Notes: generated by a model from the letters alone, not told the origin. Shown: positions 43,801-51,880, counted from the first letter of the stretch. The stretch is DNA of 64,000 nt from Epiperipatus broadwayi (GCA_028023455.1 JAQFVV010000001.1:23250001-23314000); one strand, 5' to 3'. Program-made: numbers and translations.

Positions 43801-43804
43801 TTGT

Positions 43805-43950
43805 ATTACTGCTACTACTACTCTTACTACTACTGCTACTGCTACTGCTTCTGCTGCTACTGCTACTAACTACTACTATTATTACTAACTATTACTACTA
43901 CTACTAACTATTACTACTACTACTACTATTACTATTATTATTATTATTTT
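43805..43950. repeat. Compound (ACT)n/(ATT)n microsatellite
   Basis: Directly visible. Confidence 0.95.
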
Positions 43951-46900
43951 TATTATTTCAAAAGAGCTTTATTGAAATTCAAAATAGTTACATATTTACA
44001 AAAAACATAGGTTTCATCACAAGTTTACATGGTTACTTATAACTTATTAGTAACTATATAAAAGATTACATAAAATTAAATTTGATTATATATATTGAAA
44101 GAAGTAAAAAAAAGGTTACATAAATTAATACAAGTTACAGAATGTTATATAATTCTTTGGTATCTACTTTTTTAAAGGCATTTAATATTATATACTGTAC
44201 CCTTTTGTTTAGGTCAGAATGGATTATTTCTATTAATTTTCTGGAAAATTTTAAATTTTAGAGTTAAGTAAGGGATGATGTATGTTATGTGTTGATGATA
44301 TTTTAATAATCTATTTAGGGCAAATAAAATAATTGATGTATAATATTATGTTGGTATTTAAAAGAAAACAGTTAACTAAAAATCATTATAAGATTGTATG
44401 GTTGGGAGAACTGGCCATAGGAAATACTGATTTAATAAGTCTTATAAATAATAATTAGGGTAAATTTTAAAAATAAGGCTTTAAAGTTAAATGAATAGAT
44501 TCTTCAATAAGAATAATCATATTTAATAGTTATATTTTAAAATACTTTAATTAGAAGTGATAATGTAGTGAGTAAAGTGTATATTCGATTTTATAATATT
44601 AAAATAATTATTTTAAAATTGTGCTATAATATTGAGTTATGTAATATTTTATAAATTAAATTATTTATTTTAGTTTCATTTAAATTATTAGTGGCTCATT
44701 TAGTTTTGTAAATCACGTGATGTGTAATATTCACACCTGTGCTTGAAAATAAAATAATGTTATCTGTTATAAATATTAGATTAGGTTTTAAAAATAGATA
44801 TAATAGATGAAATTAGATTTATGTTTTGTGTTGAAAATAAATACGTTAGGTTTAAAATAAAGGTAAAAATGGTAATAAATATTAAAATGTGATTTTTAAA
44901 AGTTATTTTAAAGTATTTATTAAGTGTAAATAAAACATGAAAATTAATTAAGAATTAAATAATATGATAAAAATAAATATTTAATAAATTATTATTAGTT
45001 TTAACTTTAATCTGGTGTTCGTTTCCCAGGATCCTTGGGAATAAGAATTGTTTAATGGACCAATCAAAGAGGGAGTAGGCTGAAATATATAAGAGCTGTG
45101 CAGGAATTTCCAGGTCACTTATCTCATTATACCAATATACTGTCATACCATCATTATTATTACTACAACTTCAGTAAATTAATTGGTAGAATAATAGTCA
45201 ATTTTATTTAATTTCAATTTTATAAAAGTACAGTAATCTGTTATTATAAGGACGTGGCATAGAAATGTGAGGCTAAAAAATAAGTAATTCCTTATTTGCC
45301 AATCTACTTTATCCAATTTATCATTAACTTAAGCATGGAAAAGTCATCACTAAATGTAGAAGGATTGGTGGAAATATTCAATTGTTATTATCATATTAAG
45401 CACATAATTTTGCTTGTGGTAATCAGTCATATTAATTTACAACTGAATTTCATAGAAAGAACCTGAAGGAGAAAATATAAAGAATTTCAGGAAAAATGGA
45501 AAGTAAAATGATATAAAATATTTTTATTAAGAATACTTAGTTTAAAATACGATGAAAAATGCTTTAAAAAAAAAAAAATCTTTAAATTTGACCAAGCAAT
45601 TATTTTGGAATGCTAAGATATTTCTTTCTGAAGAAATATTGAAAATAATTGAAAACTGGAATTTTTAAAAAAAAAGTATAAAAAATTAAGATCATTTGCA
45701 AATATGATTTATATCATATTTAAAAATATTCAAAATTAATAATTAGTGTGTTCTGGACATATAAAAAGTTTTCTGAGATTTATTTGTGGAAATAATTTAA
45801 GTTATTGGCAAATGATGGGGAAGTTTATTGGTTGTATCAGAAGACATTGAACCTCAGTAAATATGGAAAAGTTAGAATAATTTGAAAATTATCTTAATGA
45901 AGAATATCAGAAGTATTTAAATTCAATATTGACATAGCAATGAATACCTGAAATATTTTTAAATTTTGGAGACAAGAAAAATATTAATTATATCAGTTTG
46001 GATATTATGGATTAAAAGTAAACTTACTGTATTTAACATAAACAGTTATTTTTGAATTAGTCTTGGAGCATGCATAGTTATTGGCATCAAAAGTCTGATT
46101 ACAAATGTTTTACCAGGAGAAAAAGACACTTCCTGTAATGAACTTATTATTGAGAAAAAGAACATTTCATTGTGAGAAATTTTAATGGAGTTGTTGTAAA
46201 TATAATTTTAAATTGTTTTTTGTTTTACTAACAAATTTATAATAATGTTTATTCACAGTATAGGGATAGCGTAGGAACATAGAACATTAAATTATTTACT
46301 AACCTAGTAATTAAATTTTATTGTAAAGAAAAAACTCTTTAATAATTTAAAAAAAAAAAACTTAATATATTTTAAACTGTGATAATGGGGAATAGATGAT
46401 AATTAAAATGTTTTATTTAGTTCGTTATCCAGAAGACATCGATTAAGTAATTTCCAACAGAAATTACTTATGGTAATAATGTAACATATTAATGATTTTA
46501 TAATGTATTTTATTATTTTGTGTGTATGTATGAATGCATATATAAAACATGATACCTACACATAATTTATCATTTGTTTAGTCATTTTAAGAATATACAT
46601 AATTTTATCGATATCATAAAGATATTTAAAAATAAGGGAAATATAAGTATATGATTCTATTATAACTGAACTTGATGTTTTATTTGAATAGTTTAAAGTA
46701 TTAAAATGTGACATTGAGGCCGATTGTTTATACTTAAATTTGAGAACTACCAAAGGATGAAATAATCTTGTCTTATGAGTTAGTTAGACTGTTATTTTAA
46801 AAAAATGAATTTATTTATTATTGTAGAAATTTAGGAAGGAAGTTAGTGATGTAAGGTGATAGATCTTTAATGATAATATCTTAGTATTAGGTTACATAAG

Positions 46901-48700
46901 ACCAAGGTAATATTATATGTAGAGTTTATTTATATGGGAATAAGAGTATACTATATTAATGATTATGCAAGTATAGATAACATAGCCCTATAGCTTGTGT
47001 ATATTCATGGCAGTGTTTATTTTCTATGTGTTAAAGTTTAATGTGCCATAGTGCTGAATAAATAGCCTGGACATTATATTTGGTAGTAGAGGTTATTAGA
47101 CAAATAAGTCATACCTTATTTCGCATACACTGTGACCATGATGATTAGTTGATAAAGATGTTATTAAGTTGAAGTTATAGTTTATTCCATATACCTAGTG
47201 GTTTATTTATTATTAGAATTTTCTTGGATTACATTGTAAAGAATGGTAGTTTAAAATCAGAGATAATAAATAAGTTTGGAAATACAGGATTGTTCTTTAA
47301 GTAGATAAGATAAGTTATGTTACTTAGAGTAAAAATAAGTGTAAAAAAGAATTGTAAGAACATAATTTCATCAGTGAAAGAATCATAAAACTTCTCATAT
47401 TTAAAAATTTTTTTTTTTTTTTTATAAAATAAATACTTGATAATAAAAAGGGAATGTATAATGATATTATTTAATTATTAAGAATTTCAAAGATATACTT
47501 ATAATGCATATTTTTATTTACAAGTAAAGGTAATAGACTGAATCGTGTTTAATGAATGTAAGTAATCATAAGTTTTTATAAAAGTAGTTTTATGACAACA
47601 CACTACTTACATACAGTATATTTGAAATTTAAAGTAATAATTAGTAAGCAGCGTAGTTTGATGGTATGCTATACAGAATAATAAATTTTTTTTTAAAAGG
47701 TAAATAACAAGAGTAAGTTCATATTAAAAGTATTAACTTATATTTTTTAAAACCTATTGAATTAATAAAATTTAATAACTGTAACAAGAAATCATATAAT
47801 AATATTTTGAAAATAAGAGATATTTTAAGAAGAATGTTCTGTATCTTATATTTTAAGTCATTTAATTTGTATTAGAAAAGTACTTAAATGTGAATAAATA
47901 GAATTCTTTCAGATTGTAAATAATGTAAATAATTTTATTGTTGAGTTTGTTAATAAAATTGTTAAACTTGTTTTATAAGTCTTGGTGTTGACTCAATTTC
48001 TTCACATCACAATTACATAATCACAGATAATTATAATTAAGACATAATATTTGCACATCATAAATAAAATTGTTATTTAAGATTTATAATGTTTTATTGA
48101 TATGTTTTATTTAAGAAGTTTCATTTATTGTATTATTTTGATGGTCATGGAATAATTACTAAAGATTTACATTGAATTATATTTGTAATGATTGCCACAT
48201 ATTTTCAGGTTATAATATCATATCATAGATGTTTATTTAAGATGCCATATGAATAAGAGAAGGTTATATTACATTATTATTATGTGATATACATGAACAA
48301 CATTATAAGTAGAAAGATAGGAGAGTAAATTATAGATTAAAGATTAGTATTATTATTTTGTTATTATTAGTATTATTTAATTGTAGTTAAGAATGATATT
48401 AAATCCCTTATCATACTTGATTACAAAAGTTATAATTAATTTAGAATTATTTTAAGAGAACCTGAGATAATTTAAGTTAAATTAATTTTAATAAAGATAT
48501 TCAGATTAATTCATTAAAAGTTATGTATTTAATTAATTTTGATTAAAGATGTAAGAGTATTATAAATGTAGTATTTAAGTAATAGGAGTAGGGATAGTAT
48601 TCTTATGCCATTAAGGTGATATCCTGCAGGATATTATCTTAATGTATTCATTCTGCTACTTGTAAACTCATTTCATAGTCTCATGATTTTATTAGATATT
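43950..48700 (-). mobile_element. Highly decayed non-LTR retroelement(s)
   Basis: LINE-like strand asymmetry, T-rich tail at about 43950, weak RSITL (RPITL-like) near 46860 and a possible endonuclease start near 48620; boundaries and number of elements uncertain. Confidence 0.35.
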
Positions 48701-48799
48701 CATTTATTTAATTTTATAAAACAGAACTATATTATTATTTATTAGTTAAGCTAATTTAATCATTGATATTCTTTAAAATATAGTTATTGTTGATTTAGA

Positions 48800-50721
48800 T
48801 ACATTTTAGATGAACATAGTTATTTTCCTGAGCTAGATCAAGTGATTATAATTACATATTTCCTGGAAGTGAGGGTACAATACATATATAAATGATGCAG
48901 CTTTTGTTGCAATTAGGTTATATCATTTTAGCACTGTCTCAGTTGCTGACACATTAAGGACCAGATATCATGAAAAATGTTATATGGGGCAAATTTTCTG
49001 TCAATCTTCAGTTTAATCCAAAATGTATTAGGATTCCTTCTAGGATTATTATGTATATAAATGCATCTAGTACATCATAATGCTTACAAGATGAAGGTAC
49101 TAGCTCTAATCCTAGCAAGAATTCCTATTGTGTAGGTTTTAAAAAGATATGCAATATTAAATAAGAATTTTTAAAAAGGTTAGGAAGAGCAATGCGTATA
49201 TTATCATATCATCTACAATCATAGAATATATGCTTTTGATTTCAAAATCTTTATGACATAGGGGACAAAAAGCATCAATGTTTGTATAATTTCTTTTATA
49301 TTTATAAAAAATAAAGTGTTGGTAATGACCCCAAGTTAAGTTTTATTAGAAAATCAAAATATTTTAGCTGAAGTTTCCAGAATCTAAATTTTCTAACAAG
49401 TTGCTGATTGTTTAGATCCCAAATGGGTTTGCTTTGACTATATTGGCTTATTAATAGATATGTTTGCCAATATTTATACTTATTCGTAGGGGGACAGAAG
49501 GTTAGTTTATCTATGCTCAATAGTGGTTTTATTACATTAGCCCAACAACCAGTACCAAGCTGAGGTCTATTCGTTGGTGTAATTTTTAATGACGTAGCAA
49601 CATAATTAAATAGATTTGTAAGGGAGGTAATCAGATTAAATGTTTTCTGTATTTTAAATATATTTAATGAGTGTAGTCCTATCCCATTATGAATTAATGG
49701 ATTTTTTAGTTTCATAATAGGGATGGATGCAATGTGTCTACTCCACAGAAGTTTTTTGAGCATGGAGTAAAGAAGCAAAGAAGGCTTTAGTGTAACTGAT
49801 TATACGGCTATAATAGGTAATTCTTGTCATAATGAGCATATTAAACAATGTGACTTTAGAATAAACTGAAACGTATCACTTTGAAAGGGAGCTAATAATT
49901 TTTTCTATTTTTTCTTTAAGAGAATTCTGTATTTTTGTTCTCATTCCAGTACAACTAAGATGGAAGGGAAAACTGAAGAATGAGACAGGGTTTCCTTTAA
50001 ATTTACATTGTATTAGTTTGCCTGTATATCTGCCAACTAAATGTTTTGTGTTAAATTGAAATCTAGTTTGTATCCCTGTGAATAATGGTCTAAAAATTGT
50101 AATAATTTGGAAACATATTTTTGTGATGATAAAATAAAATAAAAAAGTCATCCATATAAATAATATATTAAATGTTATTTTTGAATTGTGGTATAAAAAT
50201 ACCAGGTACCCATTCCTCAATCACTTTAAGGAGGGGATTTATGTACACTATAAACAGTAAAACCTTAAAAGGGAAACCCTGAGGGATAGAACAATGAGGT
50301 TTAAAACCTGGTGAGTATTTTCAATTTATTGACATATGGATTTCTCTATCAATAGATTGGTGAGTATATAAATTAATGATTGGGGATAGACAACTTTGTT
50401 AAGAGGTTTATAAGTTGGTCTATTAAAATTGAATCAAATACTTTTTTTTTATATCCAACCTAGGACTATATTTTTTTATTTTCTAACAGTCTCCACAACA
50501 GACTTAAAAATAATTGCAGCTAAAGCAGTAGATGCACCTCTCTTTGCAAATTGCATTTTGACTATTGTTGGTAAGATAAAGGCTTCAATTTTATCATTTG
50601 TCACTGATTTAAGAATCTGGATGCTGAGTGGACTCATGGATATAGGACATATATTATTAATTGTAGTGATATCTCCAGATTTCTTAAGAAAGGTACAAGC
50701 AATAATGGATACAATCCAGAT
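48800..50721 (-). mobile_element. 5'-truncated L1/Tx1-like LINE (RT to C-terminus)
   Basis: KKSGDITTINNICPISM, LDIKK.FDSI, IPQGFP...YINPLL, catalytic YMDD at 50147-50158, KIEKIISSLSK, KNPLIHNGIGL, CCHC-like remnant near 48940. Confidence 0.85.
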
Positions 50722-50724
50722 TTA

Positions 50725-51268
50725 AACTAACCATGTTATAACATACACACCCATACTGGATATAACAGTAAAGGCATTTCTGATGGCATTAAGTTAAACT
50801 CTTTCAGAGTCATCTGGTGTCAAATCTAGAATGAGCGACATGTGAGCAACTTGAGTTACAGCCCATCTAAGCTGAAATATGACCACAAATGGAGTATAGT
50901 ATAGAAGGCATGTTAAATCTGAAGATTTGTGGCATCCAAAACATGGAATAAATATAAATGGAAAACTATAAACAATGACAACAGTCCCAACTAAATGCCA
51001 TGATTGTTGTTTACCATACCAGCATGTTAAATAAGGGTTGTCAGATTCTATTCCAATGAAAGTTGTAGAAATAGCATCACTAACTTGACCAATTAACATT
51101 ATATAACCAGCCATAGAATCACTGAAATATAAGACACTTTTGAAGTACACAAGAAGATAAGTAAACCATATAGAAGCATACAAGTTATTTAAGATGTCTG
51201 ATTCTGAATGAATACCATTGAATAAAAGGAAGTTGTTTTAATCTTATAATTTTGGAAGTGTCTGCCAT
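50725..51268 (-). pseudogene. MFSD12: Intronless 5' fragment of MFSD12 (MFS transporter), about 180 codons, disabled
   Basis: ASIWFTYLL...GQVSDA...WHLVGT...SFPFIF.PC.GC...LLYYTPFVVIFQ..WA.TQ.AH.SLI.DL....ERV*LNAIRNAFTV matches the MFSD12 N-terminal half; ATG at 51268; frameshift near 51195; in-frame stop at 50794-50796. Confidence 0.9.
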
Positions 51269-51443
51269 TTTACACTATATCTGACAAACAATGGTCTGCA
51301 TATATTAGTAATAATAATTCAAAATAAAGCAATTTCAATTCATACTGCTATATACTTTAATAACTACAGTATTATATTACTAATAGTGAAACAATTTCAA
51401 ATTCTAGGAAGCACATGACTTAAAGGTTAAGATTGCAGGTGAT

Positions 51444-51880
51444 GTATTATTATTATTGTTGTTGTTGTTATCATCATCATCATTATTATTATTACTATTA
51501 AAAAATTTGTATAACATTCCAATGTTTAAAAGCGAAACATTAAAAAATTCAGCCTTAGTAAGAAGCGAAACATTAAAAAATTCAGCCTTAGTAAGATTAC
51601 CTAGTAATATATTTGAAACAAATGATAGAACATTTAGGATTGCTGTACAAAAACCTACAAATGTTTTGTAAACTAGATTAACTGTGCATTTTTGTTTTTG
51701 GATGTAAAATCTGTTAAATGTACTAAAATAAATTATAAGTTATTATTAATTATTATTATCATCATCATCATTATTATTATTACTACTACAACTGCTACTA
51801 CTATATTATTATTGGTGGTGGTGGTAATGGTATTAGTAATAATAATAGTAGTAGCAATAGCAGTGGTAGTAGTAGAAGAT
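51444..51880. repeat. Two trinucleotide microsatellite tracts and a 33-bp tandem duplication
   Basis: (ATT/GTT/ATC)n at about 51444-51500 and 51740-51880; aagcgaaacattaaaaaattcagccttagtaag twice at 51530-51595. Confidence 0.92.

Follow-up and report, generated by a model that had tools for sequence, protein, structure and literature searches.

Here we analyse a stretch of 64,000 nucleotides from Epiperipatus broadwayi (GCA_028023455.1 JAQFVV010000001.1:23250001-23314000), hereafter the window, whose own positions are used throughout. The searches covered the whole genome assembly, which is 5.6 Gb long and very repeat-rich. On the minus strand, the window carries a unit in which the spliced 5′ part of an MFSD12-like (MFS_2) messenger RNA (mRNA) is joined head-to-tail to the 3′ part of a long interspersed nuclear element (LINE). 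The two parts share their orientation and no tail lies in between. The original prediction, made from the window without searches, had read the locus as a chimera produced when a LINE reverse transcriptase (RT) switched templates. From the 5′ to the 3′ end of the unit, the following features are present.

51443-51449, minus strand: 5′ candidate target-site duplication (TSD) TAATACA, formed by the final 7 bases of a 58-bp compound trinucleotide microsatellite (51500-51443)
51297-51442, minus strand: copy of exon 1 (5′ untranslated region, UTR), 146 bp, 94% identical to G000:C12424:5386030-5386177
50988-51296, minus strand: copy of exon 2, 91% identical to C12424:5517822-5518133, with the ATG and a frameshift inside
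50780-50987, minus strand: copy of exon 3, 91% identical to C12424:5533213-5533421, joined exactly at the parental splice sites
50724-50779, minus strand: copy of the first 56 nt of exon 4, 97% identical to C12424:5545480-5545535 or so
50720-50723, minus strand: junction filler AAAT, four unassigned bases
48880-50719, minus strand: LINE part 1, 5′-truncated, starting ~20 codons ahead of RVT_1, with the stop of open reading frame 2 (ORF2) at ~48931 and 50 nt of 3′ UTR after it
44196-48879, no strand assigned: inserted element of 4,684 bp with 8-bp terminal inverted repeats (TGTACCCT / AGGGTACA)
43956-44195, minus strand: LINE part 2, the remaining 3′ UTR, with AATAAA at 43973-43968
43809-43955, minus strand: LINE tail, a compound (TAA)n/(TAG)n/(CAG)n microsatellite
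43802-43808, minus strand: 3′ candidate TSD TAATACA, following the LINE tail; the neighbouring repeat TE3 begins with the final ACA of this heptamer

The composite nature of the unit is evident from a whole-genome search with 301 bases laid across the join, which splits in two. The first 121 bases of the query find one other place, on contig C12424, at 92% identity, and from base 177, 182 or 184 onward the query finds at least 38 repeat copies at 87-91% identity. Therefore, a single-copy host part abuts a repeated element at 50724-50719, close to the ~50722 at which the join had been predicted. A search for further copies of the mRNA/LINE junction found none in the genome, and the host part matches only itself and the parental exons.

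The host part (51442-50724) was aligned to its parent exon by exon, and for searches its broken reading frame was taken as separate open pieces. The four host pieces are collinear with the parent on C12424, where introns of ~131.6, 15.1 and 12.1 kb separate them. All three are missing in the copy. The parental pieces are bounded by AG...GT(A/T), and the window copy joins them base-perfectly, with exact removal at the GT/AG borders. The copy thus has the precise absence of parental introns that marks a processed copy, as the original prediction expected, and the parent is not itself intronless.

Since its formation the copy has decayed. It differs from the parent at 53 of 718 aligned bases (7.4%), and nearly all parental CpGs read TpG or CpA in it; the window as a whole has 26.8% GC and a CpG observed/expected ratio of 0.24, a strong CpG depletion. 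The predicted ATG is present at 51268-51266. The ~180 uninterrupted codons said to follow it are not: the frame is broken by a 2-bp deletion relative to the parent between 51195 and 51194, by a TAA at 50796-50794 where the parent reads GAA, and by a second in-frame TAA at the join itself (50724-50722), made by the filler bases. The frameshift and the stops make the host copy a dead pseudogene, and because the last stop is a product of the filler, the apparent continuity of the frame into the RT is accidental.

The copy is more complete at its 5′ end than the short leader from ~51310 that had been predicted, beginning instead at 51442 with the copy of the 5′ UTR exon. Homology to exon 1 begins exactly where the parental upstream sequence ceases to match, so that the copy probably reaches the 5′ end of the mRNA and 51442 probably marks the transcription start. 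In the parent, a CACGTGA E-box lies 8-14 bp upstream of the putative transcript start (L019:1480-1500; C12424 just upstream of 5386030). Motifs of this kind are recognised by MITF/TFE factors at genes for lysosomal and pigment functions. A second copy of parental exon 1 (87% identity), together with ~20 bp of promoter with the CACGTGA box, is found at G000:C6226:10533080-10533245 (L036). This match was considered as a second retrocopy and rejected, as it carries the ~20 bp of promoter and has no exon 2 joined to it; we read it as a DNA-level duplicate or a paralogous promoter.

As for the identity of the host gene, a 129-aa open piece (51183-50797) matches Pfam MFS_2 (PF13347) with an E value of 3.4e-12, and the read-through scores 60.5 bits. 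In a word search, the host protein finds one unnamed 158-aa protein at 50% identity; in PDB only MelB is matched, and in the Atlas only bacterial MFS_2 fragments. No named eukaryotic relative was found by word search, in PDB or in the Atlas. The Pfam match places the gene in the MFS_2 family, and the name MFSD12-like goes no further than this family level. Its N-terminal motif presumably resembles that of MFSD12. Elsewhere in the genome, MFS_2 matches stand in long uninterrupted frames at G000:C48:1561527-1562036 (474 aa) and G000:C6225:2739524-2739700 (583 aa). Neither is close to the MFSD12-like parent, and the two may represent transporter genes without introns, or retrogenes.

An ordinary processed pseudogene keeps the 3′ end of the mRNA and its poly-A, and any truncation is at the 5′ end. 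The copy studied here has the 5′ end and lacks the 3′ half and the poly-A. As predicted, neither is present at the junction, and nowhere in the window is there any sequence from the rest of exon 4 or from a later MFSD12 exon. This absence bears on a history of two events, in which a processed pseudogene formed and was then hit by a 5′-truncated LINE of like orientation, its 3′ half being lost afterwards by deletion. Retroposons of one strand are piled up here in each other's microsatellite tails, so repeated hits at one spot do occur. However, besides there being no trace of the missing half in the window, such a deletion must end exactly at the LINE tail, the TAATACA at both outer ends would be a coincidence, and no LINE TSD is present within exon 4. 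We therefore hold two separate events to be improbable.

The break itself can be fixed nearly to the base by comparison with the parent and with other LINE copies. The last unambiguous host base is 50724 and the first unambiguous LINE base is 50719 (the start of CTGGATTG), LINE homology starting within 50719-50724 and microhomology amounting to 0-2 nt. The AAAT filler may be untemplated; alternatively, its last two bases may be LINE-derived, one copy reading AT there, or a slip of 7 nt may have drawn the four bases from a TTAAAT located 8 nt further along the parental exon. Parental exon 4 extends 62 nt past the last shared base to a GTAAGT donor, so the break lies within the exon, and the parental bases right after it are TAGAC, not a GT donor. 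On the LINE side, the sequence upstream of the break is conserved in 7 of the 8 family copies examined and ends in ...ATAC, not in an AG acceptor. As these copies continue upstream, the window LINE is truncated at this point. In one LINE copy (L006, region G000:C12398:9631238-9631357), a 47-bp internal deletion has its 3′ edge on the same base, the start of CTGGATTG, as the LINE break of the chimera; this may be a coincidence, or may reflect a fragile or pause site in the LINE RNA.

The junction thus shows neither the host donor nor the LINE acceptor of a spliced mRNA/LINE chimera, and a mid-exon join with no splice signals on either side counts against a spliced read-through transcript. A different transcript-based route, of the 5′-transduction type, would start from a truncated LINE lying in exon 4 of one parental allele; the spliced exon 1-4/LINE RNA, ending at the AATAAA, would be retrotransposed and the source allele lost. 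This route would also yield one TSD around both parts and an mRNA part from the gene's own start site, and human mRNA/LINE-1 chimeras arising from intronic LINEs and upstream promoters are known (10.1101/2025.02.02.635956). We nevertheless find it very doubtful, since the assembly shows exon 4 of the parent undisrupted, the 90 kb of parental sequence from exon 4 downstream are free of this LINE family, the junction lies off the splice site, and two retrotranspositions plus loss of the source would be required.

The LINE part is 82-89% identical to genomic copies and carries many frameshifts and stops. It starts at residue ~89 of the ORF2 piece of a near-intact family copy (L032, on C6199, ~5.9 kb), 20 codons before RVT_1, and is split over several frames. 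The original prediction was right in that the LINE runs from the RT domain through to the C-terminus, ORF2 ending at ~48931 and the YMDD motif being read in L032. It placed the end of the element too early, near 48800, as the LINE ends at 43956 and is followed by the tail. As it also stated, the 5′ part of the LINE is not found upstream of the host part, nor anywhere else in the window. An LINE-like RT at 54079-52492 was considered as this missing part and rejected: it belongs to a different, distant family, with 30-55% amino acid identity and no nucleotide match, and covers the same RT residues.

The near-intact copy L032 contains an upstream open reading frame with a CCHC knuckle and a weak signal of an apurinic/apyrimidinic endonuclease (APE; Exo_endo_phos below cut-off). 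Its 698-aa ORF2 piece contains RVT_1 (E value 2.9e-32), YMDD and a weak zf-RVT (E value 5e-4, below cut-off). The best PDB relatives of this ORF2 are human L1 ORF2p, and one Atlas neighbour is labelled Tx1; L1/Tx1-like seems a reasonable label for the family. Other family copies have tails of (GTA)n(ATA)n, (CAT)n(AAT)n or (GAT)n, and in L032 an (AAT)n stretch borders the 5′ end as well. These arrangements, seen in very few copies, suggest that the family integrates into, or primes on, trinucleotide microsatellites. The LINE 3′ UTR holds 1 to 3 tandem units of ~250 bp, their number varying between copies (L032:7692-8474, L034:7893-8320). Pairwise divergence between LINE copies is ~15%, and this value and the 7.4% between host part and parent are compatible with one age for both parts of the unit.

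Within the LINE 3′ UTR, homology stops at 48880 and resumes at 44195, the LINE coordinates being contiguous over the interruption (L032 7748 / 7745). The interrupting 4.7-kb element has terminal inverted repeats and is flanked by a 4-bp duplication, GTAT (48883-48880 and 44195-44192), and is therefore a later insertion that lies outside the chimera proper. It is AT-rich and very abundant, the genome holding over 2,000 candidate matches, 87-94% identical to it. Other copies of it sit in (TA)n tracts, at times tail to tail.

A single TSD around both parts had been named as a feature to look for, and a candidate is present: TAATACA brackets the whole unit. Its 3′ copy lies beyond the LINE tail and not at ~48700, where it was expected. 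The heptamer occurs 18 times on the minus strand of the window. The naive chance of meeting it within 20 nt is ~0.006, rising to ~0.05-0.13 when only the non-microsatellite bases are counted. Comparison with other TE3 copies shows that the ACA of the 3′ TAATACA belongs to TE3; as a target-site duplication would lead one to expect, these three bases also precede the mRNA start. We consider the TAATACA at both ends to be moderate but not decisive support for one event. Shared outer ends also speak against a mis-join of a retrocopy read to a LINE read during assembly. Such artefacts might be feared in a genome of this size and repeat content, but the join lies at unique sequence on the mRNA side, decay on the two sides matches, the same 7-mer stands at both outer ends, and the contig is megabases long; this explanation is scarcely credible.

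Retroposons on the minus strand are lined up head to tail around the chimera, and behind each of them stands a trinucleotide microsatellite. The neighbours of the chimera are as follows.

54079-52492, minus strand: distant LINE RT, followed by a microsatellite at 51915-51733
51813-51497, minus strand: TE4, a short repeat, followed by the 58-bp microsatellite
43804 downward to 43255, minus strand: TE3 (LINE-C), an older 5′-truncated repeat, probably part of another distant LINE

The same-strand chain looks as if each retroposon had inserted into the tail of the preceding one. LINE RT regions at 54079-52492 and 43215-42399 (minus strand) have 27-55% amino acid identity to the ORF2 of L032. A perfect 33-bp tandem duplication lies at 51530-51596, inside TE4.

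Taken as a whole, the unit is probably the product of one target-primed reverse transcription (TPRT) event, in which the RT switched from the LINE RNA to an internal site of the mRNA; the responsible element would be an APE-type LINE of the Tx1/L1-like family with trinucleotide microsatellite tails. Under this model, priming would have taken place at a (TAA)n-type microsatellite, and the LINE RNA would have been copied from its tail to ~20 codons before the RT domain. There the enzyme would have abandoned the LINE template, at a point of 0-2 nt microhomology and leaving 2-4 filler bases, and synthesis would have resumed on the spliced MFSD12-like mRNA at an internal site in exon 4. Copying would then have run to the 5′ end of the mRNA, the cDNA being joined to the upstream target and TAATACA duplicated. 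Neutral decay followed (~7% substitutions, near-total CpG loss, frameshift and stops), and a DNA transposon came to lie in the LINE 3′ UTR. Of this account, the spliced origin of the host part, the mid-exon join, the shared orientation, the point of LINE truncation, the LINE 3′ end with its tail, the single copy number and the later transposon are read directly from the sequence, and the copying steps are proposed. What remains is a decayed, dead, single-copy insertion with no sign of present function.

Several observations favour this switch of templates. The parent has introns, no LINE 5′ portion lies upstream, and no separate TSD or poly-A bounds the host part alone; each of these, had it been otherwise, would have told against the original prediction, which is supported. 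In addition, the missing remainder of exon 4, the LINE-free 90 kb at the parental locus, the missing LINE 5′ part and the unique junction argue together against a LINE hit on a complete retrocopy, against read-through from an intronic LINE and against a propagating composite element.

Other observations weigh against a template switch. The acceptor site is internal to the mRNA, in conflict with a jump from end to end, and microhomology that might explain an internal landing is slight or absent. TAATACA is short, and 4 of its 7 bases resemble the microsatellite at either end. Paralogous flanks gave no empty site, because the flanking TE4 and TE3 are unrelated and truncated at the insertion; the remainders of both are absent from the window. 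The join is known from the assembled sequence alone, and sequence by itself does not separate a switch in the course of reverse transcription from an RNA that was already chimeric, nor do the results set it apart from a lost parental allele with the LINE in exon 4. The two RNAs might have been fused before reverse transcription, for example by ligation of a cleaved mRNA to a cleaved LINE RNA, and the fusion retrotransposed in trans via the LINE 3′ end. The product would be the same, with one TSD, shared orientation and a direct junction, and an internal mRNA break with almost no microhomology suits ligated broken ends at least as well as an internal switch; this ligation route has been discussed for U6/L1 (10.1101/2025.02.02.635956). 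It needs two RNA breaks and a ligation, of which there is no independent sign, and the 2-4 filler bases are more typical of terminal addition by RT than of RNA ligation. The single-copy junction also counts against it. We therefore regard a prior RNA fusion as unlikely and retain the template switch as the preferred explanation.

Bipartite chimeric retrogenes formed by LINE template switching are known in mammals and in Magnaporthe (Buzdin, Gogvadze and co-workers), where the 5′ part is a full-length cellular RNA (PMC2104539). Like these, the unit described here combines a copy of a cellular RNA at the 5′ side with a 5′-truncated LINE that has kept its 3′ end and its tail; the two abut in one orientation, and no tail separates them. 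The known chimeras have short flanking direct repeats, to which the short, partly microsatellite-like candidate TAATACA may correspond, and a microsatellite or A-rich tail, matched here by the trinucleotide tail. In contrast to them, the mRNA copy is 5′-complete but not full-length, as it ends 56 nt into exon 4, and the setting is a non-mammalian animal with a Tx1/L1-like LINE that has trinucleotide tails. In U6/L1 chimeras (PMC4476161), a 5′ cellular RNA likewise precedes a 3′ truncated LINE in sense orientation within one TSD, here a candidate. However, U6 is a small RNA made by RNA polymerase III (Pol III) that is mostly present in full and attached through its 3′ end, whereas here a spliced Pol II mRNA is joined at an internal position.

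Seventeen human mRNA/LINE-1 chimeras with 5′ exons have been reported (10.1101/2025.02.02.635956). They share with our case the first exons of a long-intron gene upstream of a LINE and one TSD (in our case a candidate), the layout of the case with FHIT exons 1-3 being very similar. Many of the human joins are at splice sites, suggesting cis- or trans-splicing, and often involve a near full-length L1, whereas the join described here is mid-exon and its LINE lacks ORF1, the endonuclease domain and the start of ORF2. Chimeric retrocopies mediated by long terminal repeat (LTR) elements are known from Drosophila, mosquito and vertebrates (PMC5131818). In these, too, host mRNA pieces are fused to a retroelement by template switching, invertebrates included, but LTR element sequence lies on both sides and microsimilarity is present at the fusion points; in our case the partner is a non-LTR element, the tail is of the TPRT type and microhomology is at most 2 nt. 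The original prediction had called such events rarely documented in invertebrates. The statement is fair where a LINE is joined to an mRNA, but too broad for chimeras made by RT template switching in general, given the LTR-mediated cases in Drosophila and mosquito. With respect to target sites, the Tx1-clade LINEs Kibi and Koshi and the crocodilian Tx1 target microsatellites (PMC4494074). The family described here resembles them as an APE-type, Tx1/L1-like LINE found beside microsatellites of its own tail type in a head-to-tail pile-up. It differs in that the target would be of the (TAA)n type, a preference suggested by very few copies, and in that its membership of the Tx1 clade is putative.

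In this study, we describe a cleanly resolved LINE/mRNA chimeric retrocopy outside mammals and fungi. Such accidents are known but have seldom been shown this cleanly there; the parent gene, the three removed introns, the break points in both RNAs, the LINE end and tail, a candidate single TSD and a later insertion are identified together. The locus indicates that the RT of a Tx1/L1-like LINE with microsatellite tails is able to link its own cDNA with a host mRNA, and that the mRNA can be entered at an internal acceptor site. Its value is that of a documented case and a seed for a genome-wide census, not of a new mechanism. It is possible, if rather doubtful, that this LINE family often switches to internal sites of host mRNAs and that the chimera is no one-off. 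If so, the family would be a regular source of promoter-proximal gene fragments, comprising the 5′ UTR and first coding exons, scattered at microsatellites, and would provide a LINE-driven route of exon capture in a non-mammalian lineage that could be counted genome-wide.

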